In this document: positions 1 through 64,000 of the stretch, piece after piece
Layout of the letters: each line of letters begins with the position of its first letter
Position numbering within the stretch: position 1 is the first letter of the stretch
The notes under the pieces: generated by a model
What the model was told of the DNA's origin: nothing
The model's database searches: none
What the model saw: only the letters and a program-made list of their open reading frames with translations
Assembly (NCBI GenBank): GCA_964035545.1
Contig: OZ037769.1
Span: 11,252,633 to 11,316,632 of the forward strand
DNA: 64,000 nucleotides
Reading direction: 5' to 3'
Source: Bugula neritina
Taxonomy: Eukaryota; Animalia; Bryozoa
Program-made: the position numbers and the translations under genes

Positions 1-1721
1 AAGTTGGGGGTGACTGGGTGCATTAGTTTAATTTCTGAAGTTTGGAGATTCCAACTTAAACCCCCAACTCTAAACTCAGAACTTCAAACTACCGCACTCA
101 TTCAACTCCAACTCAGTGCTCTTTATAGAACAATTCAAGAAACTCTGTTTGACTATAGCAGTGGTTCCTAAAAAAGTATTTTAAGTTTTTAAGGCTACAG
201 ACCATTTGTCTCAAACCATTTGTCAGCACTGTAAGCTAGACCAGACTGCTCCATCTTATCTGTCTAAAAGAAGGATGCTACACTAGGCTGTGCTATTAAT
301 AACTGTGTGACTGGTTGTGAGTTTAATGCCTAAGATCAAAACATTGCCTATTATAGCATACCAGAACTCCTGAACAGGCTTGAGGAAGTAGTAATTGTGT
401 TGATTTAAGACTCTACTTGATTATAAGAAGTCTGTCAGTTCGTTATTCTCACAGCTGCCGTTCTCCATGTTAAAACTATCCTTATAACTTGAAGTTACAT
501 GATGTAGTTTGTTTCAGCCCAGGTGACATCCAGTTTGTTAATTCAAAACCCAAATTATTAATCATTTCCAAATATGTGGAGAATGGTTTTCAAGGGAGTC
601 CCTCAAGGCTTATAGAGTTTTGTAACTGAGGTTAATGATGCAAGATCTCCCAAAACTTGTTTTATGCAGCAATTTTTCTTCTCTCTTTTGTTATTAATAG
701 GTAAAGGAGTTGTCCAATATAAAGTGAAGTTCAATATTGTGCATTCTACTAACTTACTATGTAGTAATGGAAGTTCATTTTTAAAACTGAAAGTAAATTA
801 AAAATAGATGATAGGTACATTCCTTGTCTGCTCAATAAGTTGCTGTGTGAAGTAGAGTGAGTCTAAGAACTGAATAGAAGGCATATGGTGGGCATGTATC
901 TAATGTGTTCCCTAAAGGCTTGTAATTTGAACATATTGTATAGAGTGATAATTAACTTAATACAGTTGTTAATACTAAAACACAGCCTGTAGCATTAGTA
1001 TTGAGGCTCAGTCATCTAATCACATGGGGTGAAGGATCAATACAATAATATCATTATTTGTTCTAAAATATCAACCTGCATTAAGTTACTCGTAGTGTTT
1101 GTTTAAACAAAATGAACTCAGCACCAACATGCTGTAGCATTGACTGTGTGAGGGGATTGTAAGGAAGTTGTGAGTAAAATGATATGTGTTGATGAAAAAT
1201 AAGTTGACAGTATAACTTACACATTTAATCACCACCCAAGATGCCAAAAGGTGTTGAGTTTTTCATTCTTATATTGTAAGGCGAAATAGTTTGTGGTATT
1301 TGGTAACTTATTTTTGTACGAACTTGAAATGCAAGCTTCAAACCACTTGGAAACTATAATCTTAGGTTCAATGTTGAACTTAAGCTGCACGTATACAGGC
1401 AAATTATTTTGGCCGATTTTGTACTAGCCGATTTCTCTGTGGCCAATTTGCAATGAGCCGAAAAATCTAGATGATTTTTATGTCCTGCATTATTTGTCTG
1501 CTTTCGGATGGCTCTCAGTCTATATAACTTTCTTAGGTTTATGCGCAGAGGTACAAACGCTCCCTGATCTGAAATGATTTCAACAGTAGTGTTAATCGCT
1601 CGCTGTCGTGATTTCTGCCGCCTTTTGATTGGCTGGTTCAACTGAATATCGGCGAGAAATTGATCATACTCAATTGTGAAAATCGGGCCAGGAACAAAAT
1701 CGGCTGATAAATTTTATTTTA

Positions 1722-1763
1722 AAAAACTGTCGGCCTTATGATTTTATAAGGCCGACAGTTTTT
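1722..1763. repeat. Perfect 18-bp inverted repeat inside a CGGCC/GCCGA-rich degenerate repeat (~1395-1790)
   Basis: aaaaactgtcggccttat - gatttt - ataaggccgacagttttt. Confidence 0.85.
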
Positions 1764-1989
1764 CGGCCTTATGAAATATTTATATAGAATACAAGGAATT
1801 AGGCTAGAAGTGTGTGGCATTTGTTTTAATTCGATACCTAGCATTGGGACAATCTCTAATATTAGAATGTATAAGCATAGCACTAGCCAGTTTTGTATCA
1901 CTGATAATATCCTGCGGGAAGTGTAGAGCTTCTTGTCACTCATAACTCACTCTAACATTATTCACTATACTCAATGTGTTGTTGGTCAG

Positions 1990-4900
1990 GTTATTCCACA
2001 ATCATTGTGCGGAACTTATTGAACGACTTAAAGAAAGTAGCCATAGTTGGAGCGCCATCTGACGAGGACAAAGGTGCTGTCGTTATCTTTGAGCTCGACC
2101 AAACCAGTAAGGTTCTGAAGGAGCGGCTGAAGTTTATGGGAGACCAGTTTGGGTCTGGGTTTGGATTATCTGTTGCAGTTGTAGACATCAGGAATGATGA
2201 GTAAGTCAGTCACCAATTACCATTTTAATATTGAAGTGTTTAGGATTGCCTTTTCTATGTCATGAGGGAGTAAATCCAACAGTGCAATTTATCCAATTAT
2301 AATTATATACTACTAATATTGTAAGTATGTGTGTTTACATACGATATGATTATTGTGATGTATGACTATGCATACTTTAACACTCAACTGTTTCTAATTT
2401 CAAAGTTGCAGAATTTATAACTGTTTATATTTGGTTTCTTTTTTGTTGTTTCAAAATTAATACAAAAGAAGTTTTGCAAAAACTGAAGGACAAAGAAATC
2501 TTTGCAATTCAACCAACAACTTTTTAAGATTCCCAAATATATTGTGTTGGTAATATACTATTTTTAGACACCCGAGCATGGTGGTGGGAGCACCATTTTA
2601 CAGATCTTCATCTGTTAGTGATGCCAACTCAAGAGAGACCATCTCCGGAGCCATATACTTCTACCAGAACTACAATGATGGCATTCGTGGTGATTCTAGC
2701 AAAGTGATCATCACTCCCGGGCTGTGTAAAGCTGCGGACACCTCCATGTGTGTCAATGCACAGTTCGGGTATGCTGTGACTGGTGTTGGAGATGTGAACG
2801 GCGATGGTTTTCATGGTTAGTTTTGTTACCATACTGATCTCTTGTCAATGTAGCTCTATGTAGTTTCCTAATTAACAATTGTCATCAGCAAAATTTGACT
2901 ATGATTATTGACATTAACTATTTACATCAACTATAGGCTACTATATTTTATGATATTTATTTTGCTGTTTTAATGGCAAAAGAATGTGCCAGCTGCGTGA
3001 TTTTTAATTAATAATTTCTAGTTTTACTCAAACTTCAAATAATTTATTGTTTAAATTACATCTCTCCTATATAAATTATGAAATTATTTTTTAAATAAAC
3101 TTCTTTAGATATTGCTGTTGGAGCTCCATTCTACGGACGGGGAGCCGTATTTCTATTTAATGGCCGAGCTGATGGCAAACTCGAGGATACGCCAAGTCAG
3201 GTGCGTTGGTCAGCTTTGCTACAAGTTTGAAGGCAGACTTCTAGTTACCAATTATTCTCATCTACATTATTACCTGCTGATTTTCAGATTATAATGGCCG
3301 AGGATATCTCAGAAACTTACACAACCCGACCTATAAGTGGGTTTGGGATCTCCTTATCTGGTGGGCAGGATATGGACGGGCAGGGATATGCGGATATACT
3401 AGTTGGGGCTCACTCCTCATCACACGTTGTCCTACTCAGGTATAGCTGATAAACGACTGGCAAATGATTTCCTGTTTTTGTCTCTAACTGTAGACCAAGG
3501 GGCCCCAGGGCCACCTCTGGTCCTTTGCCCATTTTTCAGTGGCCCTTTTAAAGCTTCAGATAAGTCAAAACTGTTGGAAATATTCTGATTAGCACAGTAT
3601 AGGTTTGGTGACAAATGACTTTATTATAATAAAATTTAACATGTGTATAACCATGTGGCCCTTTGTTTTGGCTGACCTCTGAACTTGGCCCTAATGCAAA
3701 AGAAGTCGCCCACCCCTGCTCTAGATGCTAAACTCTCTGCTTTACTTTTTACCTTCACAGATCAAGGCCTGTTATAAATGTGCAAGGAGCGATAAAGCTG
3801 AATAACACCATACTGAGTCCCAAGAAAGATGAAACCGAGTGCCTCTCTAACCCAAGTTCTACCAAATCCTGTATTGACTTTACGATATGCTTTACGGCCT
3901 CCCTGGCTCTCGCTGGCTCTACGAAGTAAGAATTCCTTGTATTGTCATTGGCTAATACTATTCCGTTATTACTCATGTATATAAACCATGGTTTTTCAAC
4001 CAATCACCAGCCAGCTATTGCGTTATCTCAGAAATTTTTTTTGTAACAGTGCTCTGTATTGGACATTTTTAAATTAGTCCATAATCAATAAATTTATATT
4101 CTTATAAAACTTTACAATTTATTTACCAAGTTCCTTAAAGATGTTGGCCTCACTGCAAATAGCTATATTTCCTACTGTAAATATGTTGGATAATACAAAC
4201 TTATTGGGTATTTTAGAAGTTCTGGAGTTCGTGCCACAGTCGATTATACTGTGACTGGGGACTCAGGCTATGAGTATCTAGGCAACCGTAGAGTGAGGTT
4301 TAATGTGGCTGGTGATGCCAGTACGTCGGTGTACACGGGTTCTACTGTTGTTGACGTCAATGGCATGGAGCAGTGTATCTTGATGGTGGCTTATATTACT
4401 GTAAGTAATATGCTGTTGAAGTAAATATATCATTGTATTGGCGTGTCTTGGAATGCCTATATTTTTCTTAGTAATATAAGATAATAAAGGTTTGTGGATA
4501 GATTGCAGGATGGGCGGAGACAAACCTGTGTGTAGGCTAGGTGGGTGGAACTTGGGGGGCATATAGTGTAAATAACTTGGGGGGCATATAGTGTAAATAA
4601 CTTGGGGGGCATATAGTGTAAATAACTTGGGGGGCATATAGTGTAAATAACTTGGGGGGCATATAGTGTAAATAACTTGGGGGGCATATAGTGTAAATAG
4701 TCAGCCAAGGTTATGTGCAGAACTAATTTTTACTAAATTCAAAACTACAATATATTTGATAAAATTAAATCTCCGCTCAAATATTTTTTCAAATATATTT
4801 TGTAGCAGTTTGCAATAATTATAATAATGTAACTCAACTTTTTTAGCTATTTAACTCCAAATATAACAGCAATACTTATGATGACAATGAATAAATAATA

Positions 4901-7900
4901 ACAATAATATTATATTTAAATAGTTAACAGATTATTTTATCACAAAATTCTCTGATTTATTTATTCTCTTTCTACTAAATGAATTGAGTGTTTCATTTGT
5001 CGATGAGTTACTAGGAAGCCTGTAAAAAAATAGAGCTTTGTAACGAAGTATTTTTGTTTGTGATCTCATACGTGCAATGTTGAATGTAGTAGCCACACAA
5101 TTTCTTTAATTATGATCTACAATAGGGAGGCAAATTAACTTTTGTTGCAATCATAATTTATTCCACGTACTTACAAAGCAATGTTAAATTTTATTTGTCG
5201 ACACGTTAGCGTTGTAGAGCCACCCTCTAATATAAGTTATACAGATTAAAGCCATTTTCTAATGTTTGTATCGTCAGTGTTGATAAGTTGTGGTTTTGTT
5301 ATAACAGGAAGTGAAAGATGTGTTGAAGGCAGTAGAGTTTGAAATGGAGTACACTTTGGCTCCTCCTTCCAGTGTTCAGTACGAGGATATAAATACTTAC
5401 CCTATAATGGACGTGCTGTCTTACTCCATACCCACTGCTAAGGTATATCAGCTGTTTATCTCTGCTCTGCTATGCTTTCTGGGAAATCATTTAATATCAG
5501 ACAGTTAGGCTGTCAATAGTCTTTCATGTCAATAGTTATTTTTGTTACATTTTTGACATTCTATTTGTGTTAACAAGCATACAAGGAAAACTTATCACTT
5601 ATATGCATCTAGTTATGTCTAGATTTCAAAACGAATATTTTATCTCATCGCAGATTGACTTCAAAAGAGAATGTTTGACCCCCAGCTGTCTGACTGACCT
5701 TGCTGTAGTTGCCATGTTTACTGACGTCAAGAACGTCATTCCTGTGGAGGAAACGGAACAGACTGGAAACAATGAGTTTGTTTTTGACTCCAACAGGGTG
5801 AGTTGGCGTTTTCATAAATAATTTTGTATCATTTGTCTACAAATTGAGTTTAAAACTCAGAATTGTCCTCTCTGCTCTTTCAGTCATATTCCCTTATGAA
5901 TATATGAGTGTTTGTCTAGCCATGGTAGTGTTACAGCCTAACAGTGTTAGTTTCTAGGAGTTAAGTTTTTATAGTTTTTGTATATAAATATGAAAACTAA
6001 GTTGAAATTAAATGCGTTGACTCTGGTAGTTCTGTGTAATTTATACATTCTGAAACAGTTGCATTTATTGCCATCATTTGGCACACAATCAATTCTGTCT
6101 CAGCCTTCAATAGTGCAACCTGAAGTTATACAAAATCTGAATTATTTGGTGTTAGTTTCCAGTCTTCTGGCACAAAGAGTGAATGCAACAACTTTTCTTT
6201 TTGAGTTAATGAATCATTAGTCAATGTTTCAGGTTGACAAGCTGAATCTCACTGTAACTCTGACCGTGGAAGAAAGCAAAGACCGTGCCTATGAAACTTT
6301 TGTCTACGTGAATCTTGAGCCGGAGTTGCGATACACCGGCGTGTCCACCTCTCTGGACCCCGTGAGTTTATTACAACTGCCTAACTCGTTGAGTGGTCAT
6401 CTGGAAAATTCTATTCTTCTTTGCCAACACTTGACTAGTTTCCTTTTGTTTATATCAAATTTTGGCAAACATTATAGCAAAGTTTTCTTATCAGGGTTTA
6501 ATTGCAAGGATGTGTTTGTTGCAGTCTGCATCTTGCTCTGATGGAAATAAAGAATTCACTTTAATAGTGTGTAGCTTTGGATCCATACTTCAAGGAGAGA
6601 CGCGTAATGTCACTCTCACATTGTCATTTGATGAGCTCGGTCCATCGTTCACTACTATCAACGTCACAGCAAACACGTGAGCTTCCCTTTGCAGTATGCA
6701 ATAACAATGTTTTTAGTAGACGGAATTTTTGAAAGGCACTTTCTCTTCTACTTGTCATAAAATTAGCTTTTTCTCTCATCCTTTGACTTGTGTATTTTAG
6801 TGGACATGTCTTTATTTTTCTAAAATTAAACTTTTGAGGTAGAAGTGCTCTGCCCTCTGACAAATACTCTTAAATAAAATAATACAATAAACAAAACATG
6901 TTTAAAAAAGATGGAGCTTGTATCATCTTGCTCATAATTTCGATTTATCTTATTGTTAGGCGAGACAGTTGGTACGTACATTACCTATCTAGCAATACAG
7001 CTTATTAGATACTAATGCTAAGCAGTATCAACTGTATTATTGTATGTGTTGAATACACAAGGAGAGATGTGGAGATGCTTTATGTTTATATTTACAGAAC
7101 AAGTGAAGATAATCACGCTGCCAATGACTTTGCGTCTCTCAAGGTCAAAGTCAACATAGTGACTGATTTAGAACTCCTAGGGTATGTGTGTTTGTAATAT
7201 CTTATTGTTAGTGTAGTATTTTAGCGATCACTTATTTAGATAAATACTCTCTGATTTTAATACATCAAAGAAGATTTGTTTGCTATTTTCTTCGGGGTAT
7301 AAGAAAAGTTTTGTTAGACAATTAGTGTTAATTAAAGTAAATATTTGGCTAGTGTAGGTTTTCAATTTTTCTTTCACTATTTAATGCCGAAAGAAATCGC
7401 AGCTTTTCATGACTAAGACCCTGTAAAATTTACCTTATGCTCACATAAGACTGAATAAATACAGAGATTATGCTACTGCTGTAGCTACATAATATAATTG
7501 TCTAACTATTTCCAACACAGGAGTGCGACGAGGGGTGATAGCGTTGAGTATGGTGACGGTGATGTTAAAGGCGTTTCAGCCATTGAGACTGATGCTGATA
7601 TTGGGGACTACGTACAGCACACTTATACTGTTAGTACCTATTTATCAGCTCACGTAACTAACTTTATGGTTTTGTAGACAGGCTCTACATAGTTCTTGCT
7701 TTCAAATTATCAGTTAGTCTTCCGAATTTGAAATTGTCTCCCATGACTTTGTTGTAAAATTATTTTAGTTAAAAAATTCAGTTAGACTCTTGCCTGTTGG
7801 GTTTCTAAAATATTTTGTGTGTCTGCCAATCATTTTGCCATGCTCAGTCTACTTGCATTAGTTGGGCATAATTAAGGAAGTTTTTCAGTTTTTTTTAAGA

Positions 7901-47364: not shown

Positions 47365-50300
47365 TCACATCATTTCTTTTTGAAGAGCATTTCTCTTTCG
47401 GATTAACCTTTTCTCTCGCTCATATTCCTTCATTCTCAAAACCATACTGAAAGTAAATAATGCAATGAATCTATCAAATTAGTGCAGAGTAAAATATGCT
47501 TATGTATTGTATCATAACTACTACCTTTTAGACGGGCAGCCAGACAATTAAAATTAAACTCGTATATGTCTAGTGCTTTCAGATCTGTATGATTCTACTT
47601 TGCAGTCAAATGATTTTTAATACAAATGTTTATATTAAATTGAAGTTTCTGATAATAGTATAAAACAGAAAAGGCTTTGACTGGATACTCACTCTGCATA
47701 TTCGCAGTCTCCGTGAAGATGCTTCTCGTGTGCACATGCCTTATACCAAGGTGTGTTTTTCTGTCGACAACGCATATAATCTATGTACAGATGTGCACAG
47801 TAATCACGGTATTGGTGAGGGACATTGGCAGCCTCCATTTCTTCATGGGTTACTTTCATCTCTACAAACAGGCATAGTAACAATATTGCATAAGGCAAAA
47901 AACAGCTCAGCTGAGATCTAAACATAGTCATTCTCCAAATAGTAGTTATACTGTAAAATTACACAGAAGCTGAAAACTACAAATACACGTGAAACTTTTT
48001 TAAATTTATCACTGAAAAAACTGTATTACAGTGAAAGAAAGCACACAGCAAAAACTAGCAAAAACTTCAGGTAGATAGCAAAATGGAATTATGTTGTGCA
48101 AATTTGATGCGATCAGCATCTTGAAGAAATACCGTAAGCACTTTTGGTAGGAGTTACCTAATTGGTTGGGTATTATTTAGTGTTTCTGTGTTAGCACTCA
48201 CACCATATATTTTTGTGTTAAGTTTAAAATAAGTAGGTATAGCATAAAGTAGCAAAGCCAAATGCAAATGACAAAAATTAATTTTGGTTCCCACATGAAT
48301 GTTTTTTTTTACAAATGCTTTCAGGTACAAAATTAGATTTCATGTGACAGAACCTTTAATGGCAAAAAATTGATTATGTAATTTAAAATTTCATTGATTT
48401 GCAGAAAATTCAAGTAAAATATTTAAATTAGGCATAATAACTTGAGTCAAGTAGTTGAGTATATAGATGTATTTGAATCACCTCAAGTCAATCAATTTCG
48501 AATACTTCAGACATTGTCAGCCTGAAATGGTTCCTGCTCTCTCAAATAATAAATAATACTAGAAAAATATAATGTTGTAGCATTTATCATAATTATGGTA
48601 ATAGTAATGATTAATAATTCTCATCATCATTGATATTGATTAAAAATGCCACAAATTAAATGAGTGACTAGCATGACCCTCATCACATCAATATGGGTAA
48701 GTTAACAGTAACACTAACAGTACAGGTAAAAGGAATATCAACTTTAGCTACTCACTATGATTATTGCCAACACTAGTGGTGGTGCTAGTACTAGTAGTAT
48801 GGGTTTAAAATAAGTTATGCTAATGCAGTCATAGCATTATTTTTAGTATTAGTATTACTATTGGTGCAACTGTACACTGATATTTTTTACAGTTTAGCCT
48901 TAGGTTATACTGGTACTCATATTCATATTGATAGTGATACTCATACTCGGAGTTAGATTTTATTCACATCCACATGAATATCTCGGTTATTGATCACATC
49001 AAACTTAAAATTCAATTTGAAACATTTAACTCAATTTTACCTGTAAAAATAAACCTAAATATTAATACTTTTAGTTTTACTATGACTCTGCCACTTTGAC
49101 TTGGTATTAATTTTAGTACAACCATTAGGGGAAGGTGGGGTAAGTTGGGTCAAGGGGCAAGTTGGGTCAGGCCATTTTCTCAAAAACTGTAATGCTAGGA
49201 AACGGAATAGTTAGGTCAAGAAGTAAAGGCCAAACTAAAACAACTTCCTGCTATTACAACAACACTATCAAAAAAGAGGTGAGTGAAATATTACCTAATA
49301 TCATTATTTTTGCTTTATTTGACATTCTGTTCACCAAAACAGTAGACCAAAACTTTGTCATTAAGCATGAGGATAGAGTGCTGATGTTTTGTGTCATGAA
49401 TGCTTAGGTAGTTAGCTTATATTTGGTGAATTATAAAACTTTTTAAATTAATTTTTTCATGCAAAAATTACATGCTTTACAAAATTGCTGCCAATGGGGC
49501 AAGTTGGGTCAAAATTTTGGGGCTAGTTGGGTCAGTGGCCCAACTTGCCCCAAGTCACTAAAACATAGTGTTAATGTAATATTATTGTTGCAGATCGTGA
49601 TACTGGATAATCACTGCTCACATATATCCTTAGAGTCTGTAACTCTTGCTAAAGAATCAGGAGTTGTTCTACTCACCTTGCCACCACATATTTCACACCA
49701 ATTACAGTCTCTGAATAGAACTGTTTTCGGTCCAATGAAAACATACTTCAACAAGGCAATGGATAACTTAATGATAACCTATCTGAACAGGAGCATAAAA
49801 GTGAAAGACATTGGCGCCCTAACAAAGCGAGCATTTGGGCAAAACATGACTGTTGCTAATATAACATCGGGCTTTCGCTCATCTGGCATATTCCCATCAA
49901 AAGCAGGCATATTTACCGACGCCGACTATGTTCAAACCGATGTTACGGACAAACCTCAAAGAGTGATCAATGAGCAAGATGATCTAATTCAACTTAGCCA
50001 AGTTCATCTCAGCCAACTTTATTCCAGATTCCAATCTACAATCTAAGCACGCCTAGTACTTCTGGTTTATTGGCAGGGGCTACCTCTCAGGATACTTCTA
50101 CTTCACTGGTGGTGGCTACCTCTAAGCAGCCTGTTACCCCTCAAGATATTCTTCTCTTACCCAAAGCTGCTCTACGCAAAAATGGAGCACCCAGAAGAAA
50201 GCGGGTAAAGACCGCTATACTGATAGACACACCAGAGAAAGAAAGAATCGAACACGAATGAGCAGACAAGTTGAATAAAGGAAAGGAACGACCTAAGCGT

Positions 50301-52611: not shown

Positions 52612-55600
52612 ATGAACACAGTGGAACTGAAATCAACTACACTATTGGACTATATAATTTACTATAAACTGAGACATCTGGAGCATCTGCTTGGGTTGCC
52701 TTTGTATCCGTATGTTGACTATCAGCAGCAGAGAAGCGCTGCCCACACTGCTGTTTCTTGTCAAAACGTTGAGAATACCTTTCCCGTGCCTCTGAATAAT
52801 CAAGTCACTGCTCCTACACTACAGTTTTCTGGCAGTGGTTCTACTTATGAGCAAATTAATAAAAAACGTTTAATCCACAGTCGAGTGTTCAACCGGCATA
52901 ATGGTGGAGGCTTTAAATATAATATTTTGTCCCGAAACAAACGTTTCAACAACTCATGTTTAGTCACGTCAAACATCAACAATGATCTAAAATTGGAACT
53001 AAAACCTGAAGTAATAGCATGCCATCACAAAGATAAGTATGGATTAGAACAGCGTTTGATTGAAACTTCAGAAATAACGGCATTGTCTGAAGAAAATATA
53101 GCTGATGAGATTTCTCATGCAAAACCAGTGCATTTTTCAACATTTCCAAGACCAGTCGCTAAAAGCAAGTCTATATCACTTGATTCTGAGTACTTGAAAA
53201 GCAAATTTCTTTCTGACATTGATAAGAAACTGGAACTGCCCACACTTATACTCACTAGGGATGTTCAACGGAAGAATAATACTTATTCTATGGCAGACAA
53301 TAAAAATATACTTTCAAATGTTCAAAAGCAAGATACTCAACATAAAGGGCAGTTTGCAAAAATAAAAATAACATCCTTAAGCAAAAGTTGCATGTTACCA
53401 GCAACTCATGAAAACCTTGTTAAACCTTCTCCACCACAAAAGATGCTTTCAGATTTCAACATTAATAAACTTAAATCACAGGGCAAAGGTCAACTACAAA
53501 CTATACATACTAGAGGTCACAAAGTGGTGACAGAGAGCAGCAATTCAGAAAAGCCAGGTCAGCAAGGCGACAACAAAATTAACCAGCATTCCAAACGGCA
53601 GAAATCTCAAACACAGAAGTCATTTTCAAGGCCAAAGCTTGGTCGAAGACAGCGAAAACTCCTGCAAAAAGGAGGCAGTGGTGATAACCAATCAAACCTA
53701 GCTGTGATGTCACAATCAAAGCTAAATATTACTGATTCAGTTGCAGAAAATGAAGTGACTGAAAGCAGTTGTAGTTACAACTTAGTAAAAGCGTTTAGTA
53801 ACTCTTGTAGCGAATCAACAGAGTACAATGAATGCAACGGCATCACTGGTGATGTAAGGCATTCCGTAAAGCAGACCAAGTCAGACAGCTGTCTGTCTGT
53901 ACAGGAGTACGAGGAATCTATAAAAACAGCACCTAAGCTTATTTCACCATCAGCTTCCTTGCAAAGGCTTCTAGACGACATTATGGCTGAAAGCAAAGCT
54001 AATGCAAGTAGCAAAAAGTTAGTGGATAATGCTGCTGCTAAAATAGGTGGCAGCCTAAAGACTACTAAAGGAAAGACCACGGAGAGAAGTGAAAGTGCAA
54101 GACCCTCTATAGTTTCCAAAGAGCTTACTTTGCTACAGGTTAAAGAGTCTAAATCAGCAAACCACCAGTTGTCTGCCTCTCATATTGAGACTCAGGTAAA
54201 ATTAATGGACTCGATAATTCTGAATAATTGTTGTATATACTTTAATTGAATGTGCATATGCATTTGATTCAGCATAATACATCTATGTCATATATTATAT
54301 AAATTACAGCAATGAACACACGAAAATTTTATTGGTTATAATGTCAAAATATATACAGTATTTAACTTACATTTATCAGCATACATACCACGCACTACAT
54401 GTATTTGTTTATCATCTACATTATAAGAATAACACATAGTCACAAATATTCTGCATGTACAATATGCAATGTTATAGGTTCATTTATTATAACTTATAAA
54501 TTTAGTTCTGGCCGCCACTAGTTTATACTAATTTGAATTATAGTTTAAATGAGTTAACACATTTATGTCCTTTTGAATATTATTCAATTATCTAAATTAT
54601 ATTACAGTATGTTTCAAATCAACCCATAGACTGTTTTATAGGCCATGCAACCACAGAATCAGATAATGTGCCTCCATACATACAATAATTTAAAGACTAA
54701 TCATATAATTGCAGCAAAGTTTTCACACAAATACAAGGCAGAAATCTTTAAGAACGCAACAATCTAAAGTGATATTTGGTAAATTCTCTATGCTAGACAG
54801 CCAACAATCCAACATAGATAGCTCTGTCATAGGTGAGATATTTCATCCAAGTATTTTTAACAATAAATTTGCTTTGAATTTACTGTAGTTGTAATCTCTC
54901 CCTTTTTAATTACAATTAAGCTGAATAAATTAAATTCTTTAAACTCACTGATTCAAAAAGGCTAATTGATTAAGCCGTAGCAGGTTCATTTATAATGTCT
55001 AATTACTTTGAAGGCCAAAACGGATTGTGACCAGTATATTGTGACCAGTATATTGTGACCAGTATATTGTGACCAGTATATTGTGACCAGTATATTGTGA
55101 CCAGTATATTGTGACCAGTATATTGTGACCAGTATATTGTGACCAGTATATTGTGGCCAGTATATTGTGGCCAGTATATTGTGGCCAGTATATTGTGGCC
55201 AGTATATTGTGGCCAGTATATTGTGGCCAGTATATTGTGACCAGTATATTGTGACCAGTATATTGTGACCAGTATATTGTGACCAGTATATTGTGACCAG
55301 TATATTGTGACCAGTATATTGTGACCAGTATATTGTGACCAGTATATTGTGACCAGTATATTGTGACCAGTATATTGTGACCAGTATATTGTGACCAGTA
55401 TATTGTGACCAGTATATTGTGACCAGTATATTGTGACCAGTATATTGTGGCCAGTATATTGTGGCCAGTATATTGTGGCCAGTATATTGTGGCCAGTATA
55501 TTGTGACCAGTATATTGTGACCAGTATATTGTGACCAGTATATTGTGACCAGTATATTGTGACCAGTATATTGTGACCAGTATATTGTGACCAGTATATT

Positions 55601-57351
55601 GTGACCAGTATATTGTGACCAGTATATAATACAATTTGAAACAGAGTCCATCACAGCAACATTTTGAAGCTTGGTGTCTATGTCTATAATATGATATTAT
55701 GTGTATAATGCTTTCTCCTTTGTCATATTTATAATATATAATGCTTTTCCTGACACTTTTCTTTTTCTTGTGTATGCTTCTTTCTATATCCTATTATTAT
55801 AGTTTAAAAAGTTAAATTGTTTTAAAATTTATTAGCAGCATCATGAACCTGCAATATATGCTATTATAAATACGCTGAGAATAAAAAATATTTCAAACTT
55901 GAGTATGATATATTATATAACAATTCTGTAGGGTGCACTTGATTTTCAGTGCATTAGATTTAATATAACATATATATGCTAATATAAATACGCTGAGAAT
56001 AAAAAATATTTCAAACTTGAATATGATATATATGGTAATGCTGTAAGGTACACTTGATTTTCTGTGCATTAGATATAATATAATATATATTATATTGTCT
56101 ATGCTTGTGTATGTACAACACAATATGTCCTTATATTTCCATACTGATTTATTACAGGGACTAGGCTGGGCACCTCTTTGTACACGGGGAATCTTAGCAG
56201 AAATATTTCAGAGCAGCTTGCCAGATCGGGAGTTACGCGACCAAATAACTTCGACACAGTGGAATACAAGTACAGTCTACACTGCAATAATATCTTTTAT
56301 TCTGAATGTTCATCACAACTTCATTATATACATTTTTAGTTTATTTTATATAAGAGTGTGTATAAATTTGAGGTACTATTGTTTTAAAGCTCATTCAATT
56401 CATGAAAAATTGATTATAAACTACTGCTGATGCATTCTATTAATGCAATAAATTGTATTTCAAAATTATTTATTCATTTGAAGCAAAGTAATTTTATTTC
56501 TTATAAAATATAATAAATTAATACGCTTGAGCACAAAGCTAGTTACTCGCCATATCTATTTTAAGGGACGAACCTGAGGAGTGCCACCAGCTAAAACGAG
56601 GTCTAAATGCAAATGATCTTGAACACTGTAAAATCTGTGGTCTAGGGTTATGGAAACAACAGCAGTGTAAACCCAGGTGCCATAACATTATACAATTACA
56701 TAAAGAGAACAACTCTTACTATTGATCTTGTTGAACTAAACAAAATTCTAGTACCGGTAAAGATTTCATTTTACTTTTAGATTTTTCAACGTAATTCTGA
56801 TACACCTGACGTTTTCGGAGCACTCGAAGAGCTACTCAAATACAGTAACGAAGGTGGTAGAGTCAACAACCACAGTGTATAGTCTTATCCAACTGGTTAA
56901 GGAAGACAGAGGTAAGCGGCTTACAAGCTAGACAGATAATAAGACATCTCCTATATCATAATTTTCAAAATTCAGATTTGTTAATTGTAAATTATTGTTG
57001 TTATCTTGCCATACTTTCATGTGATAGCGGCCATTTACATCCTGTTGCCTATACTGTAGTTTTAGTAGCTTATCATTTCTTATGATACATTTTTTGATTC
57101 AAGCATGTTACCATTCTATTTTAGATATTCCCTCAAATACACTGCAGATATATAAAGATAAAAGCAGAACAAAGAGTTCTGTGCTGCCACAGGAGCTGAC
57201 TTTAGAAGAGTGCGGGTACGAAGGCAGCGTAGGCTGGTACGAAGCTGTAGACCTCGTCCTGTATTACGACTACGAGCCAGAACACTATGACTGCCCAATT
57301 CTCATCTCAGACTACTATTATATTAACAGAAAAAAGACGACAGTCAAATAG
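52612..57351 (+). CDS. Uncharacterised protein: large Ser/Lys-rich exon plus small exons encoding a compact C-terminal domain
   Basis: 545-aa ORF with donor at ~54195; phase-compatible exons ~54798-54831, 56158-56269, 56566-56676, 56781-56911, 57125-57351 (FFNVILIHLTFSEH..TTTVYSLIQLVKEDR|DIPSNTLQIYKDKS..LTLEECGYEG..LYYDYEPEHYDCPIL). The link between the big exon and later exons is not phase-resolved by eye. Confidence 0.6.
55025..55627. repeat. 14-bp minisatellite, about 43 copies
   Basis: (attgtgaccagtat)n with two blocks of the gtggccag variant. Confidence 0.97.
55866..56075. repeat. About 120-bp tandem duplication
   Basis: aaatacgctgagaataaaaaatatttcaaacttga...cacttgattttc.gtgcattagat twice. 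Confidence 0.85.
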
Positions 57352-57875: not shown

Positions 57876-58479
57876 ATATGGGAACCCAATGTTAAGGATT
57901 ATTAACAGCTCTATAGATTTCTTTAAACTTGCAGGCCTCGTTTGAAGTATAACTGGAGAGCTTCAATGTAGTGTAGAGGTTACCTTCTTAAGGTTACCTC
58001 TAGTCTTTGTAGGAGTTGAGCAACTGGACTACAGATACCCCCAAAATGTTGAATAAAAAGTGTTGGATTCATAACACTAGTTTCTTATCCACAGTTCAAA
58101 TGAGAATATACCCTGCCCCCCCCCCTCTCCATGTTATAGGACAGGAGTGTCCAACCCTTCCAGACCAAGGGCCACTGAAAGGAAACATTCCGGTGGCGAG
58201 GGCCGCATTGTAAACTTTAGTTTGGGCTGAGGACCACAGCATCAGTAATTTTAATTTTTTTTTATTCCAAATTCCTATGAATCATTACACAATAAAGTCC
58301 TAACAGTTGATGCAAGCTGCATGTTTTGTAGCATATGTATAAATAAGACATTTAAAAGGTAGTTTTTCACTTTAATTCATGCATAGGTTACGTGTGAAAG
58401 ATGATTTTAGTTTTATGCCAACTTGAAGGCCACATTAATGTAGGCTGGGGGCCACATCCGGCCCTGGGACCCTGTTGGA

Positions 58480-61400
58480 CACGGTTTTTGTAAACTGCGT
58501 AAACGTAAAACGGAAAAAAGTGGCGGAAACGTAAACAGGAGAAAACAACTCAGAAAAACTTCTAACGACTACTTTTAAACATAAAATCCGGTTGCGTGAG
58601 CGTGGCCATAAAATCAGGAAACATCCAAGCCGTCGGCGCACAAAGAGTTTAGTTACACAACTAGTTTTTATTATGGTGTTGACAATTACATTTTTACCTG
58701 CTAATAATTAACTTTTAAACTACAAAACCGAGCCCAATAATTGTGATTCTCGTAGTTGCATAGATACCAAAACCTTCGATGTTTTACTATTAACTAAATT
58801 TTAGTTGTTCAACTAACATTCGTACGACTTAAGTTATCTAGCCAGCATAATATTATTTTTTTATCGAAATTCCCATTAAAATATCTCATTAAAAACTACA
58901 GTGAAAATAAGTTAATATTTATCGTTGCATGTAATTGTTATAATAAAAAATGCTTATTATTGTTATCATGCTCATGAGTATTTTCAAACTTTAACTATAA
59001 AACGTAGAACTATCGTTAGTATTTATAGTACAATGCTATTTCAAATAGTGTGACTCAATTAGTATAATTTCATCAAATAAATAATTTGATTAATAAACCA
59101 AGTTAATACTTATGGGTTAAAATGCAGAACTTTTTAGTTTTGTGCTTAAAGTGTCTTACTTCCACTACCTCAAACTTAGGCCTTGTGCTCAAAACTTTGA
59201 TCGATAACTCACTAGAAGTAAATGAATAGCCATGGCAGCAAAGTTGTTTTAATTTTTTGTTCTTTAAAATAATATTGTAAAGATGTGAGTGAAATTGTAC
59301 ATACTAGTAACTTGTATGTATTACTGTACAGCATGATGTAATCAAAGAACACAATAACTTGAAGAACTATTTGATATTTATGCAATAAAACATAAAATAT
59401 GATGCAATAATATAAGTAAAAGTAAGAAAAAAAAAAACAAAAAAAAAAAACAAGTTTTTAGTTTTGTATAAAAATGTGTTCAAGGCACAGCAAATAAAAA
59501 TTACAAAAACATATTTGCTGACGAAATGTCACCAAAATGCTGAACAACTGAAACTTCATCATGGCTTATAACGCCTCGCATATAATTGCAAATATGCAAC
59601 GGCTTATCAAAGCTTTAATGCCCTAAACACCTAATATGAATGTACACATTTTGCAAAGTCTTGCTAACAGTTAAAATACCGCTAAATAAATCAATATGTT
59701 CTCAGTAGGTCTTCTTTGATGCTACAATACGATCTAGAGGAAATATGTAAATAATAATGGAACAATCAGCTGTCATTCTTTACTTTGAAAGTGACAATCG
59801 CAATCACAGTGGTGTGACAGCTACATTGAAACCAAACCAATTTGTAAAAAGCAACTTGATTACATTGGAGTCTTGTGACGGAGCTGGTGGTTTACTGTTC
59901 TGTCAACTCAGCAGTCAACTTCAAAGGACTTGCACATGCTAGCAAGCAAGTCCTATGAATTTGTAACAGTGAGTAGCGCAGGGAAATATTCCAAGGATTC
60001 TCTTCTTGAACACAAACAAAGCTGCCAAAACAAACAATCAACAAATTACAATTTTCTTCACAAGTGCAAAGCTAATGACAAAACACACAGCAAAAAATAA
60101 ACAATATAGCTGATTATACAGCTGTACCTTTATCACAGTTATTAGAACCAGAATGTCCGTAATACTTATTGCATTTATTCTTGGAGCTAATTAAATCTTT
60201 GTTCCTGCAACACCAATAAACTGCTCTTGTATTGCGCCTCTTTGTATACAAGTATTAGTTAAATACTTCTCACCCCACTCTTATCTGTTATATAAAGCAA
60301 ATCCAGTACTTCCAAGTTTTTAGTTAACTTGACTCCTGGTTCATCAAATCTTTTCAAAGTGATAGCTAAGACTTTTGGAAGCTTTGTAAACTGAGACAGT
60401 TGTACAGTTATATCTAGACTACTAGAGCTCAAAAATAGTAACATGAGTATTTATTCAGTAGTCAGAAATTCTCAAGAATATGGTCCAAAATATTATGTAA
60501 ACATAAAATACACAAAGTACCCTTCGAAAACATATCCATCTAGTTTCTTGGAACTGAATTGATGCCCTGCAGTGTGACCTCACTCTGTAACAAATAAAAT
60601 AGCCAATACAAAAACGTGATGCTATAGTGCCAATAAAATAAATGTTCTATTTGTTGCCAAATCACCTCTAATAGAGGAACTGGTAATAAATTCATTGACT
60701 GAGCAAATGCTGTTTCAGCATTGCAGAAATGACATTTAGTCAACTATTCAACTTCTGACCAGAACAATTTTGTCCCATTGAAGAAAAGAGCATAAGTGTT
60801 TAGTGTACCTACTAACTGTCACTTTAGGAATTATAAACTATACATAAGCAACAAATGTGTTCAAGCAATGTTAATGTTACCCAACCTATTGCATCACATG
60901 TTATAAACTTCCATTAATACCTCGGCAACATCATGCTGCTCATTATTCATGAAATCAGGTAAAACCTCTAAAAACAAAATATGTATGTAAAAGAAGCCTT
61001 AATTGGTGGCTATTCTTGATTAAAATGTCAATTATACATTTGGTTTTTGATAAGGGATTTGAAATTTATCGTTAGCCATGAAATTCAACCCTTGATCTGT
61101 GGAATTGCTACTGGCACAGTAACAAATGAAGCATATATAACCAAAAAAGAACACTAAAGTGAAACCAAAAGACCAAAACAGTGATCTACTTCTCGATTAC
61201 AGTATGAAAAAACATGACCATTTATTTCCTATATAAATAGAACAAGTTACTTTAAATCTAGGTTTAAAGTCATATTAATCCCCTAAGAAAAAGATAAATT
61301 AAAATTTATGTACTCACAATTTACTTGTAGCGGTGGTGTGCGGTTTATAGTTTGAATACATGCATTTAAAAAGCATGTATTTCCAAAATTAGTTATACCT

Positions 61401-62990
61401 CTATAATCTGTAAAAATTATCAAAACAACAGGACCATTACAATGAATGCTAAACAATGAATATTCTTGACTTCAAATTATATTATCAGAACAACAATTTG
61501 GCTTAAAAAAAACCTAGACTTTTTGGCTTATTTAATATGAAAAAGACTGTTACTCTCACAAGACAAATGTCAAATACACTATATCTGCACCACAAGACCA
61601 AAATGAGTCTTAACAGGGTATACAATGGGTTTTAAGATAACATGTGACTGAGTGTTATAGCCAATTCATTAAACACATATATGTTTAAGTTCAACTGCAT
61701 CAATGTGAAAGTTTGATGCACTTTTTCTCAACGATTTGAATAAAACACTCAAGTAGTATAAGTATTACTATCCATCTTGTCTTAGACTTACTAATTATTA
61801 ATCAATATACCATAAGTATAGTTATAAGCTTATATTAATATCACAATACCATTTAACAATAACTGGTTAGTGAATTACATATATAATTAAATGAATTAAA
61901 ATAAACATAAGATTAGCAGATGTGAATTACTACTACAGTATTAGAATAAGAATACCAATACAATTATGAATTATTATTATTAATAATACAAAATTATATT
62001 AAAATAATAGGCTAATAATAATACTACACTTTATATAATGACAATGATTATCATTATGATTATATTATTATTATTAATATTAATAATTAATTTAATACTA
62101 AAATATTAATTAACATAATACTAATACTTATACTTATACCAAGTTTAATAGTAATAGTAATACTAATAGACAATAGACATAGTAATAGAACTAGTAGCAC
62201 TAAGTTTAATAGCTATACTAATAGTATTACATTTACTATTAGTATTAATATTAGTATTAGTAATATAATTATAATTATAATAAATGTAATTCAATACCTA
62301 AAGTTAAAATGATATCGTAATCTATAAGTTATTATATAATTATCACTATAACTATAAGTATAAGTATATTAATTATTATTTATATTATTAATTAAACGCT
62401 ATTAGTATTACTATTAGTATTAGTAAAAGTGATACTATTACTATTAGTATTACAGCATTACTATTACTATTGAGTATTAGTATTACTATTAGTATTAGTA
62501 TTACTATTAGTATTATTAATATTTCTATTAATATTAATATTATTATTTATTAAATTTAATCGTTAATATGATTTAGATTATTATTTTAATCGACAATTAT
62601 TTAGTTTAAAAATGTTATTAATAATTTATAAGCAGATTGAGCTTACCCATCTCTAGCTTTATTTGTTATATTGGAAAGTCGAAGTGAGAATTTTAGGTTC
62701 AAGCAAAAAGATATAAGCTGTTCAGTTGAAGGGGTGTACTTGTAGAGTTGAAGATATCACGTTGGTTGCGAGGGATGAAATAGACTAAGTACTTAACACG
62801 TTGCCGAGGTTTTCTTAATGCAAGATTATTTTAATTTTAGAGTTGTGTCATTTTTCAACTAAAACCTATGCTTCGTGCATACACAAAAGTATTACGCAGC
62901 GATTACTAAAAAAATTGCTCGGTTAAGTACTTTTCCGCCGTTTTTGCAGAAATTTCCGCTTTTCCGTTTACGCAGTTTACAAAAACCGTG
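58480..62990. mobile_element. Non-autonomous Transib-like DNA transposon with cargo gene
   Basis: Perfect 26-bp TIR CACGGTTTTTGTAAACTGCGTAAACG at 58480-58505 and 62965-62990; 5-bp TSD ttgga/ttgga; subterminal (gg)cggaaa motifs. Confidence 0.85.
59700..62851 (-). pseudogene. Spliced ubiquitin-specific protease (peptidase C19)-like gene, decayed, inside the transposon
   Basis: Exon 61407-61318 YRGITNFGNTCFLNACIQ (Cys box); exon 60967-60886 PDFMNNEQHDVAEVL (QHD box, internal stop); TKCHFCN..MNLLPVPL (~60740-60670); FTKLPKVLAITLKRFD..KL (~60390-60330). His box not clearly readable; outer limits approximate. Confidence 0.75.
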
Positions 62991-64000
62991 TTGGACAACC
63001 CTGTTATGGAATAATATGAGCTGCTACAATAATCTAGTAAGTAGGCAATAGGCCAGGTCAATGTATGGACTTCACTAGACATCTTGCAGACTCTGTTTTA
63101 CATGCTTAATTTCAACAAGACTGCTGCAATTCCTTATGTTGAATTGAGCAATTGTACAGTGAAACAAAACTGTTATTTTTTGTTCAACAACTCTGTTTGG
63201 CATTTAATCTGATTTATTGTTCCAATTAAATAAGCATTAGCTGCCTTTGTAATCAAATTAAATTGATATAGAAATAAGATGGCTATTGCTAGGCAGCACA
63301 CAATGTGCAGTGGAGGTGATTGATGTCTCAAGAATGTTTAATTAACATTTGGATACATTTTAATCAGAGGTAAGGCATGTTGTATATATTGAGTTCTAAA
63401 AATAGCTGTGCATAGGAAGTTTTTATCACTACTCCTGCTGTATAAACAGTTAAATGCTGATATAAACTTTTCAAACAGCTTAGTTTGTCATTTAAAGATA
63501 GGAAAGCAGTGGGAGAATTTAAATATAGATCTAATCAAGTGGCCAAACAGGTTGGCATGGGATGCTTTCATTAGGTGAGATTTTATAACTTTGTGCACCA
63601 ATATATCATACTAACGTACAAATGTGCCATTTTAGAGCATGTAGCTGTAATATAACACTAATAGCAATAGCAACACTAATAGTGATGTATGATACAATGC
63701 ATACAGCAGTATATAATATAATGTAATTACAATTGACATTATTGTTTTCATTTTAGGACGCTTATATACCATATTAAATGTCTATACACTATATGGTATG
63801 CATCTAGTTTATTATAGGTTTCATAGAACTGAATTATATAATTAAATGAACTGGATAACTCATCATTCACATGATATGAAATACTATTTAATAATTAATC
63901 AACGGAACTGTTTAGGATTCTGGGATGTTATATATGAAGATAATTAATTTATAAGAATGCATGTCAGTGTTACATTTCTGTAACACAAGAATATTTGTAA

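Follow-up and report, generated by a model that had tools for sequence, protein, structure and literature searches.

A deletion derivative of a Mutator-like element in Bugula neritina and the USP gene paired with the transposase in its full-length form

Among Mutator-like elements (MULEs), carriers of an Ulp1 protease are known as KI-MULEs or VANDAL-type elements in plants, and also from hydra and lancelet (PMC2836005, PMC2528002); a C-terminal OTU or Ulp1 domain has been described in Ginger1 transposases and an OTU domain in Helentrons (PMC2836005, PMC6431247). In MULEs, Ginger and Helitron elements alike, these proteases have been proposed to involve the ubiquitin pathway in transposition or repair (PMC2836005). 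The only ubiquitin hydrolase of peptidase family C19 that we found described together with a DNA transposase is that of a Trichomonas vaginalis protein (XP_001314237.1), mentioned in one sentence as having a transposase_11 domain (IS4/IS5-type DDE) and a Peptidase C19 domain (PMC2836005). Here we analysed a stretch of 64,000 nucleotides from the bryozoan Bugula neritina (contig OZ037769.1 of assembly GCA_964035545.1, positions 11,252,633 to 11,316,632 of the forward strand; hereafter the window), in which positions 58482-62988 are a MULE. An earlier note on this DNA, made from the letters of the window alone, had described a Transib-like transposon with a deubiquitinase gene as its only cargo. 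We consider it very probable that the locus is a doubly deleted non-autonomous MULE copy, and that the full-length form of the element encodes a spliced ubiquitin-specific protease (USP) upstream of a MULE transposase.

The full-length copy (L002; G000:C1:703507-713179, element of 9.27 kb at C1:703.7-713.0 kb) is 80-88% identical to the window copy, has two extra blocks, and carries the USP and, downstream of it, the transposase on one strand. Its USP is intron-rich, with Cys box, QHD box, zinc ribbon and His box all present. Block 3071-5725 of this copy holds the His-box exon (GHYVTY...WWLFDDNKV; UCH E-value 2e-9) and the last USP coding exon; the His-box exon is single-copy in the whole genome, occurring in L002 only. 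As read from its sequence, the gene is a complete multi-exon USP/UCH (peptidase C19) with all catalytic motifs. For L002 and for the window copy, searches used one USP exon piece at a time, the sole contiguous USP searched being the natural frame of a metagenomic contig (L022, see below); exon chains of L002 were joined in local scripts for the reading-frame check only.

Positions 6177-8399 of L002 form a 741-codon open frame, the sole intact transposase frame in the genome according to our own-genome search; a transposase relic on C7 (L041) is 33-47% identical to it. The frame matches Pfam MULE (PF10551) over 2-99 of the 99 profile positions with an E-value of 7.8e-4, a match below the gathering score (20.3 versus 27.6 bits). 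Eight transposase relatives with ∼40% identity were found in public data, and six of the nine aligned proteins match MULE (best E-value 5.1e-6). In the alignment D314, D383, C404-x2-H407 and E501 are invariant, which is the D-D-CxxH-E pattern of MULE transposases. We characterized the frame, by these predicted features, as a MULE DDE transposase. No RAG1/Transib-like match to it, the only transposase of the family, was seen in the Pfam scan. Of the longer copies with a transposase and an intact USP which the earlier note had proposed to look for, one exists, L002, but the transposase is of the MULE and not of the Transib/RAG1-core type, and the label Transib-like has to be given up.

With the Ulp1-carrying MULEs this family shares terminal inverted repeats (TIRs), a 9-bp target-site duplication (TSD), a MULE DDE transposase and an internal cysteine protease deconjugating ubiquitin or ubiquitin-like proteins; unlike in those elements, the protease is a USP/UCH (C19, PF00443) and not an Ulp1 (C48), and it is encoded by a separate multi-exon frame upstream of the transposase. 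The Ulp1/C48 domain (PF02902) had no match in the transposase frame or in the USP pieces, other frames of the element not being exhaustively scanned. Ginger1 elements and Helentrons are likewise DNA transposons carrying a deubiquitinase-like cysteine protease of their own, to which the same ubiquitin-pathway hypothesis applies; however, they belong to integrase-like or Rep/Hel superfamilies and their proteases to other clans. Moreover, the protease there forms part of the transposition protein as one of its domains; here the frame of the USP is +1 to that of the transposase. The T. vaginalis protein differs in its transposase family, in its protist host and in being a single fused protein, with no conserved multi-lineage element described. 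Searches of full-text papers, not extending to the repeat databases Repbase and Dfam, turned up no description of a USP/C19 gene in a Mutator element.

To see the USP in other lineages, contigs encoding transposase relatives were searched with the USP pieces of L002, one exon at a time. One lineage (L021/L017; ENA ERZ1740060 NODE_2397) has LPK and His exons upstream of a 40% identical transposase and in the same orientation as it; in another (L020; NODE_979) the QxD, LPK and His exons are so placed relative to a 41% identical transposase. A third contig (L022; JGI Ga0314674_10003268, 3.56 kb) has a contiguous USP frame at 41-850 and then a 798-codon transposase frame at 732-3128. The L022 USP frame gave a full-length UCH match above the gathering score (contig positions 41-847, 71.7 bits, E-value 9.6e-20, profile positions 2-253 of 254), and the His box is present in L022, L021 and L020 as well. 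L022 aligns to the genomic L021 blockwise, with stretches found in L021 only between the blocks, and hence represents the L021 lineage in spliced, cDNA-like form. Three intron positions coincide between L002 and L021/L022: after ...KSG and before EV..., after ...DD.K and before V..., and after ...YE(M/K). No element-spanning TIRs were found in the L020 contig or in that of a further relative (L016), and both contigs are probably truncated; other contigs with relatives were too short to show presence or absence of a USP.

Because USP and transposase are paired in at least two distant metagenomic lineages, with shared introns, and no close host USP was found, we favour the view that the USP is a long-standing accessory gene of the autonomous family rather than a recent capture. 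The earlier note had offered both possibilities; its accessory gene agrees with what L002 and the distant lineages keep in common, while its captured host gene finds no support among the non-element matches. The capture view deserves attention still: MULEs are known to take up host gene fragments (PMC6431247), and a Pack-MULE event in this genome could have left USP exons that are a host fragment without function for the element. The USP of the window copy is indeed a non-functional fragment, and between L002 and the short subfamily the USP exons are barely better conserved than the introns (87% versus 83% identical; 21, 17 and 30 differences at codon positions 1, 2 and 3). Yet the USP of the full-length copy is complete, with its catalytic motifs, and pairing, order, strand and the three intron positions are kept where the transposases are only ∼40% identical. 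Between lineages the USP exons are 37-49% identical, about as diverged as the transposase (37-41%). Nor was a closely similar parental gene seen: searches of the genome with the Cys and His exons found no close host USP, the best non-element matches being 32-47% identical over 22-57 residues, that is, over short stretches with motifs. A word search with the L022 USP returned one fragment only and no close cellular relative, and among solved structures this USP is about equally far from USP36, USP5, USP15, USP14 and USP2 (E-values 1e-6 to 1e-3). We therefore regard capture in this genome as improbable and keep the accessory gene as the preferred reading.

The window copy itself is an ordinary non-autonomous, doubly deleted and dead member of the family (Table 1). 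On its minus strand, as the earlier note had seen, the Cys box (GITNFGNTCFLNACIQ), QHDVAE box, CxxC and LPKVLAITLKRF follow in this order in GT..AG-bounded pieces with stops; the Cys box (61318-61407) reads GNTCFLN, and the scan of the pieces with the UCH profile matched the Cys-box and LPK pieces. There is no in-frame start codon at the Cys-box exon, so at least one further USP exon must lie 5′ of it. The first deletion takes out the His-box exon, the last USP coding exon and the first downstream exons, and a genome search with the His exon showed that neither the window copy nor any other short copy has the His box (GHY...DD). Positions 60117-60254 ('YYGHSGS...') were considered as a degenerate His box and rejected; their homologue is L002 5608-5895, a long way past the true His exon (L002 3400-3525). 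Given the stop in the CxxC exon and the frameshift that the short copies share, and the lost His exons, the USP remnant is non-functional, a dead pseudogene which was already dead before the recent bursts of transposition. Hence, of the USP gene claimed as cargo the motif exons remain, but not a gene; and the reported absence of a transposase holds for an intact one, remnants of the first 22 and the last 71 codons being still present. In maize, deletion derivatives of the Mu1/MuDR type lose the transposase internally, keep the TIRs and are amplified in trans; the window copy does likewise, with no essential difference.

The main group of the family in this genome consists of ten copies of ∼4.5 kb including the window copy, to which the other nine are 95.7-99.9% identical. 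Two bursts can be told apart. The window copy, L003, L008, L009 and L015 differ by 0-4 substitutions (the window copy from its four sisters by 1-4 per 4.5 kb, and by one from L008 and L009); L001, L010, L011 and L013 are likewise 0-4 substitutions apart, and the two bursts are separated by ∼59. Four copies that could have been candidates for autonomous elements (L004, L005, L007 and L012) were rejected, as they are short-type copies, longer only through internal interruption of the 4.5-kb homology, and none has a transposase frame. The interruption in L004 (G000:C1:23110113-23119838) includes a nested long terminal repeat retroelement at L004:1713-5666 with an uninterrupted 1317-residue gag-pol frame (RVT_1, RNase H, integrase zinc finger and core); this retroelement is probably young. 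There is also a 1.2-kb miniature copy (L006; G000:C1:29584405-29585791) resembling a miniature inverted-repeat transposable element, with a perfect 9-bp TSD (TAAACCCCA). A second copy of the L002 type (L040; G000:C6:6706000-6715900), 92-96% identical to L002, has a deleted and frameshifted transposase, the next best in the genome after that of L002; its 3.9-kb deletion (L002 2957>6898) joins the region of the USP LPK exon to the middle of the transposase, unlike the deletions of the window copy, and a DNA run from the organism (X5) has this junction too.

Near-identical sisters, a perfect TSD and the lack of a transposase of its own make it most likely that the window copy transposed very recently with transposase supplied in trans, to judge from such comparisons. 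One could also suppose that short copies are kept for a regulatory role of the truncated N-terminal part of the USP or of its transcript, as a decoy or as a source of small RNA. Contigs with the deletion junction of the short copies occur in a metagenomic run labelled RNA-Seq (X1), meaning that window-like copies may be transcribed or that DNA may be present in this library, and ten near-identical copies exist. The near-identity is accounted for by the recent transposition, though, and the short copies share the stop in the CxxC exon and the frameshift, to which the window copy adds a private stop and a lost acceptor; we find a regulatory role very improbable, even more so than a capture, and retain mobilization in trans of a dead derivative.

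The inverted repeat of the window copy is perfect over 26 bp (58480-58505 and 62965-62990), as had been noted, and when extended covers 39 nt at 90%. With up to two mismatches the 26-mer end occurs 36 times in the 216-Mb genome, compared with no occurrence for a reversed control; the repeat family is therefore real and not a product of chance, and the genome search that the earlier note had proposed did find it to be multi-copy. We retrieved 15 further copies and read their flanks; both ends were readable in 16 copies with the window copy counted. The outermost two bases of the supposed CAC ends differ among copies (CA, TA, AA, AG, GC, TG, TT, AC, TC, GT), while from the third base on the ends are invariant, with all 16 copies ending CGGTTTTTG.../...CAAAAACCG. 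The conserved end begins at the C of CGGTTTTTG, so that the true termini are 58482 and 62988. All 16 copies lie between perfect 9-bp direct repeats, which read TGTTGGACA in the window copy. The TTGGA duplication that had been reported is present on either side, but as the core of this 9-mer and not as a 5-bp TSD, and the apparent CAC...GTG ends arise because the duplication of the window copy has TG as its first and CA as its last two bases.

A TSD of 9 bp is a hallmark of Mutator-like elements, while Transib gives 5 bp. The range for Mutator elements and MULEs is 9-11 bp, and 9 bp were found in every copy read; TIRs common to autonomous and non-autonomous members, also a MULE feature, are seen here as well, the TIR being ∼36 nt long and the terminal 60 bp of the window copy 100% identical to those of L002 at both ends. 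The element is thus a MULE, not a Transib. The multi-copy comparison of ends and TSDs rules the latter classification out, and a USP-carrying element of the Transib/RAG-like kind, having CAC...GTG ends and a 5-bp TSD, keeps hardly any probability: its likeness to Transib and ProtoRAG is superficial, limited to this single copy with a repeat readable as starting with CAC and TTGGA on either side, whereas a Transib has a RAG1-core-like transposase and 5-bp TSDs, and in this family the first two bases vary, the TSD has 9 bp and the transposase matches MULE. The terminus (58482-58497 and 62973-62988) reads CGGTTTTTGT, and its inner end holds ACAAAAACC, which we take to be identical to the nonamer consensus of the V(D)J recombination signal sequence; here it sits right at the tip, in the orientation opposite to that of the signal. 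This likeness is most likely a coincidence, and may have prompted the Transib reading.

Contigs from two metagenomic runs labelled RNA-Seq (X1 and a second run, X2) were aligned to L002:1700-7700. They gave eight joints with canonical GT..AG ends on L002, consensus donors and pyrimidine-rich acceptors (Table 1). The joints confirm the USP exons and show that the transcript runs past the USP towards the transposase frame. In the exons with such support the USP frame of L002 ends 15 codons into the exon starting at 4650, and the +1 frame of this exon and of the next one is open, acidic and Ser-rich, like the stretch before the transposase core of L022. The +1 offset of the transposase-leading exon relative to the last USP exon, which is spliced onto it, recurs in other lineages, three lineages showing it in all (L002:3400-4830; L022:732-850; L020:5030-6560). 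After the junction the USP frame stops at 15 codons in L022 and at 39 in L021; in L020 it stops at 15 codons if an acceptor picked by eye, TTTTGTAG with the cut before TAC, is used, a candidate site with no RNA on the contig.

A plain fusion of USP and transposase through the observed splicing is ruled out in L002 and L022, where the USP frame stops 15 codons past the junction. The transposase may be translated from a separate start, by way of an alternative acceptor or by a +1 frameshift. L002 has a candidate alternative acceptor 22 nt downstream of the observed one, and in L020 a second candidate, 16 nt past the first, would bring USP and transposase into one frame; L022 and L021 have no site of this kind. 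We consider it possible but rather unlikely that both proteins come from one spliced unit with a fusion protein made either by splicing to another 3′ site, 3n+1 nt downstream, or by +1 ribosomal frameshifting. If this were so, the element would supply its own transpososome in cis with a deubiquitinase.

Several points weigh against this reading of the window copy and of its family, besides the MULE score of L002 mentioned above. The start codon and the 5′ exon of the USP were not found in any lineage. A search with USP exons showed no clear USP in L016, with 5.8 kb of upstream sequence, or in the relic L041 of the same genome. With their 90-95% identity to L002, the RNA-type contigs must stem from a related copy or strain, and they count as RNA by the label of the library, with the splice joints as the only further support. 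The short copies are internally only 80-88% identical to L002; their true parent was a different, now missing autonomous subfamily, so that L002 as the actual source of transposase for the window copy is a conjecture. The role of the USP, finally, is a proposal only, made by analogy.

Nevertheless, a working model can be outlined. A transposase that recognizes the 60-bp ends identical to those of L002 would act in trans on the window copy by cut-and-paste, and integration would create the 9-bp duplication of the target. As for the USP of the autonomous element, it might strip ubiquitin from the transposase, chromatin or, at the site of excision or insertion, substrates of DNA repair, and deubiquitination could favour transposition or blunt host silencing; the analogy is with the Ulp1 or OTU proteases that other transposons carry. 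The suggestion that the USP acts on transposase or chromatin can thus be upheld, by that analogy, for the autonomous element only; the USP of the window copy cannot act. To our knowledge, nobody has shown what role Ulp1 or OTU proteases have for a transposon.

Table 1. Parts of the window copy (window positions) and joints of RNA-type contigs on the full-length copy (L002 positions)
Feature	Position	Strand	Evidence or remark
Left 9-bp TSD TGTTGGACA	58473..58481	.	same 9-mer at 62989-62997
TIR, element 3′ end in gene orientation, true terminus CGGTTTTTGTAAACTGCGTAAACG	58482..58517	+	copy comparison; terminal 60 bp as in L002
Transposase remnant, last 71 codons, two in-frame stops	59522..59734	-	tblastn versus L002 8187-8399, 68% identity, E 1.4e-31; own-genome search too
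Deletion junction 2, ∼1.94 kb gone (L002 6244-8186, transposase codons ∼23-670)	59735..59737	.	blastn blocks versus L002; tblastn
Transposase open-frame remnant, first 22 codons, with stop	59738..59803	-	tblastn
Leader upstream of transposase frame, homologous to L002 ∼5726-6176	59804..60229	-	blastn, 88% identity
Deletion junction 1, ∼2.66 kb gone (L002 3071-5725)	60230..60232	.	blastn versus L002; sequencing-contig joints 3048/3080>5726
USP exon remnant (LPK piece) with LPKVLAITLKRF, UCH profile positions 143-175	60274..60427	-	Pfam UCH E 0.009
USP exon remnant (SEVTLQG...DGYVFEG), frameshift common to short copies	60511..60584	-	
USP exon remnant, zinc-ribbon CxxC; in-frame stop in all short copies; acceptor AG changed to GG here	60666..60773	-	
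USP exon remnant, QHDVAE box; in-frame stop private to window copy (Arg in others)	60885..60968	-	
USP exon 2 remnant (CYCASSNSTDQGLNF...)	61035..61141	-	exon backed in L002 by RNA joint 1953>2144
USP Cys-box exon remnant (GITNFGNTCFLNACIQ), donor GTGAGT	61318..61407	-	Pfam UCH E 1.5e-5, above gathering score
AT-rich microsatellite-like internal region, 6/18-bp periodic tract at 62399-62547	61780..62560	.	
TIR, element 5′ end in gene orientation	62953..62988	-	
Right 9-bp TSD TGTTGGACA	62989..62997	.	
RNA joints on L002 (last base > first base)	1953>2144; 2619>2705; 3025>3399; 3523>3660; 3717>4649; 4827>4906; 5640>5751		
RNA joint on L002, alternative to 2619>2705	2619>2871		LPK exon thereby out of frame

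Elsewhere in the window, a 195-residue open frame at 49459-50046 (+) matches the DDE_1 transposase domain (pogo/Tigger-type; E-value 1.1e-8) and is a fragment of another DNA transposon. A 545-residue Ser/Lys-rich open frame at 52612-54249 (+) matched no Pfam family, and positions 55024-55627 are a tandem repeat of a 14-bp unit (ATTGTGACCAGTAT; 43 copies, 99% identity).

Ulp1 in MULEs and Ginger elements, and OTU in Ginger elements and Helentrons, represent independent gains of deconjugating proteases by unrelated transposon superfamilies. A third kind of deubiquitinase (USP, C19), which a MULE lineage appears to have kept through long divergence, would strengthen the idea that manipulation of ubiquitin is a general strategy of transposons. 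The genome of B. neritina, with one donor predicted to have both USP and transposase intact and with very young non-autonomous copies that have identical ends, the window copy among them, offers a compact system in which to test it.

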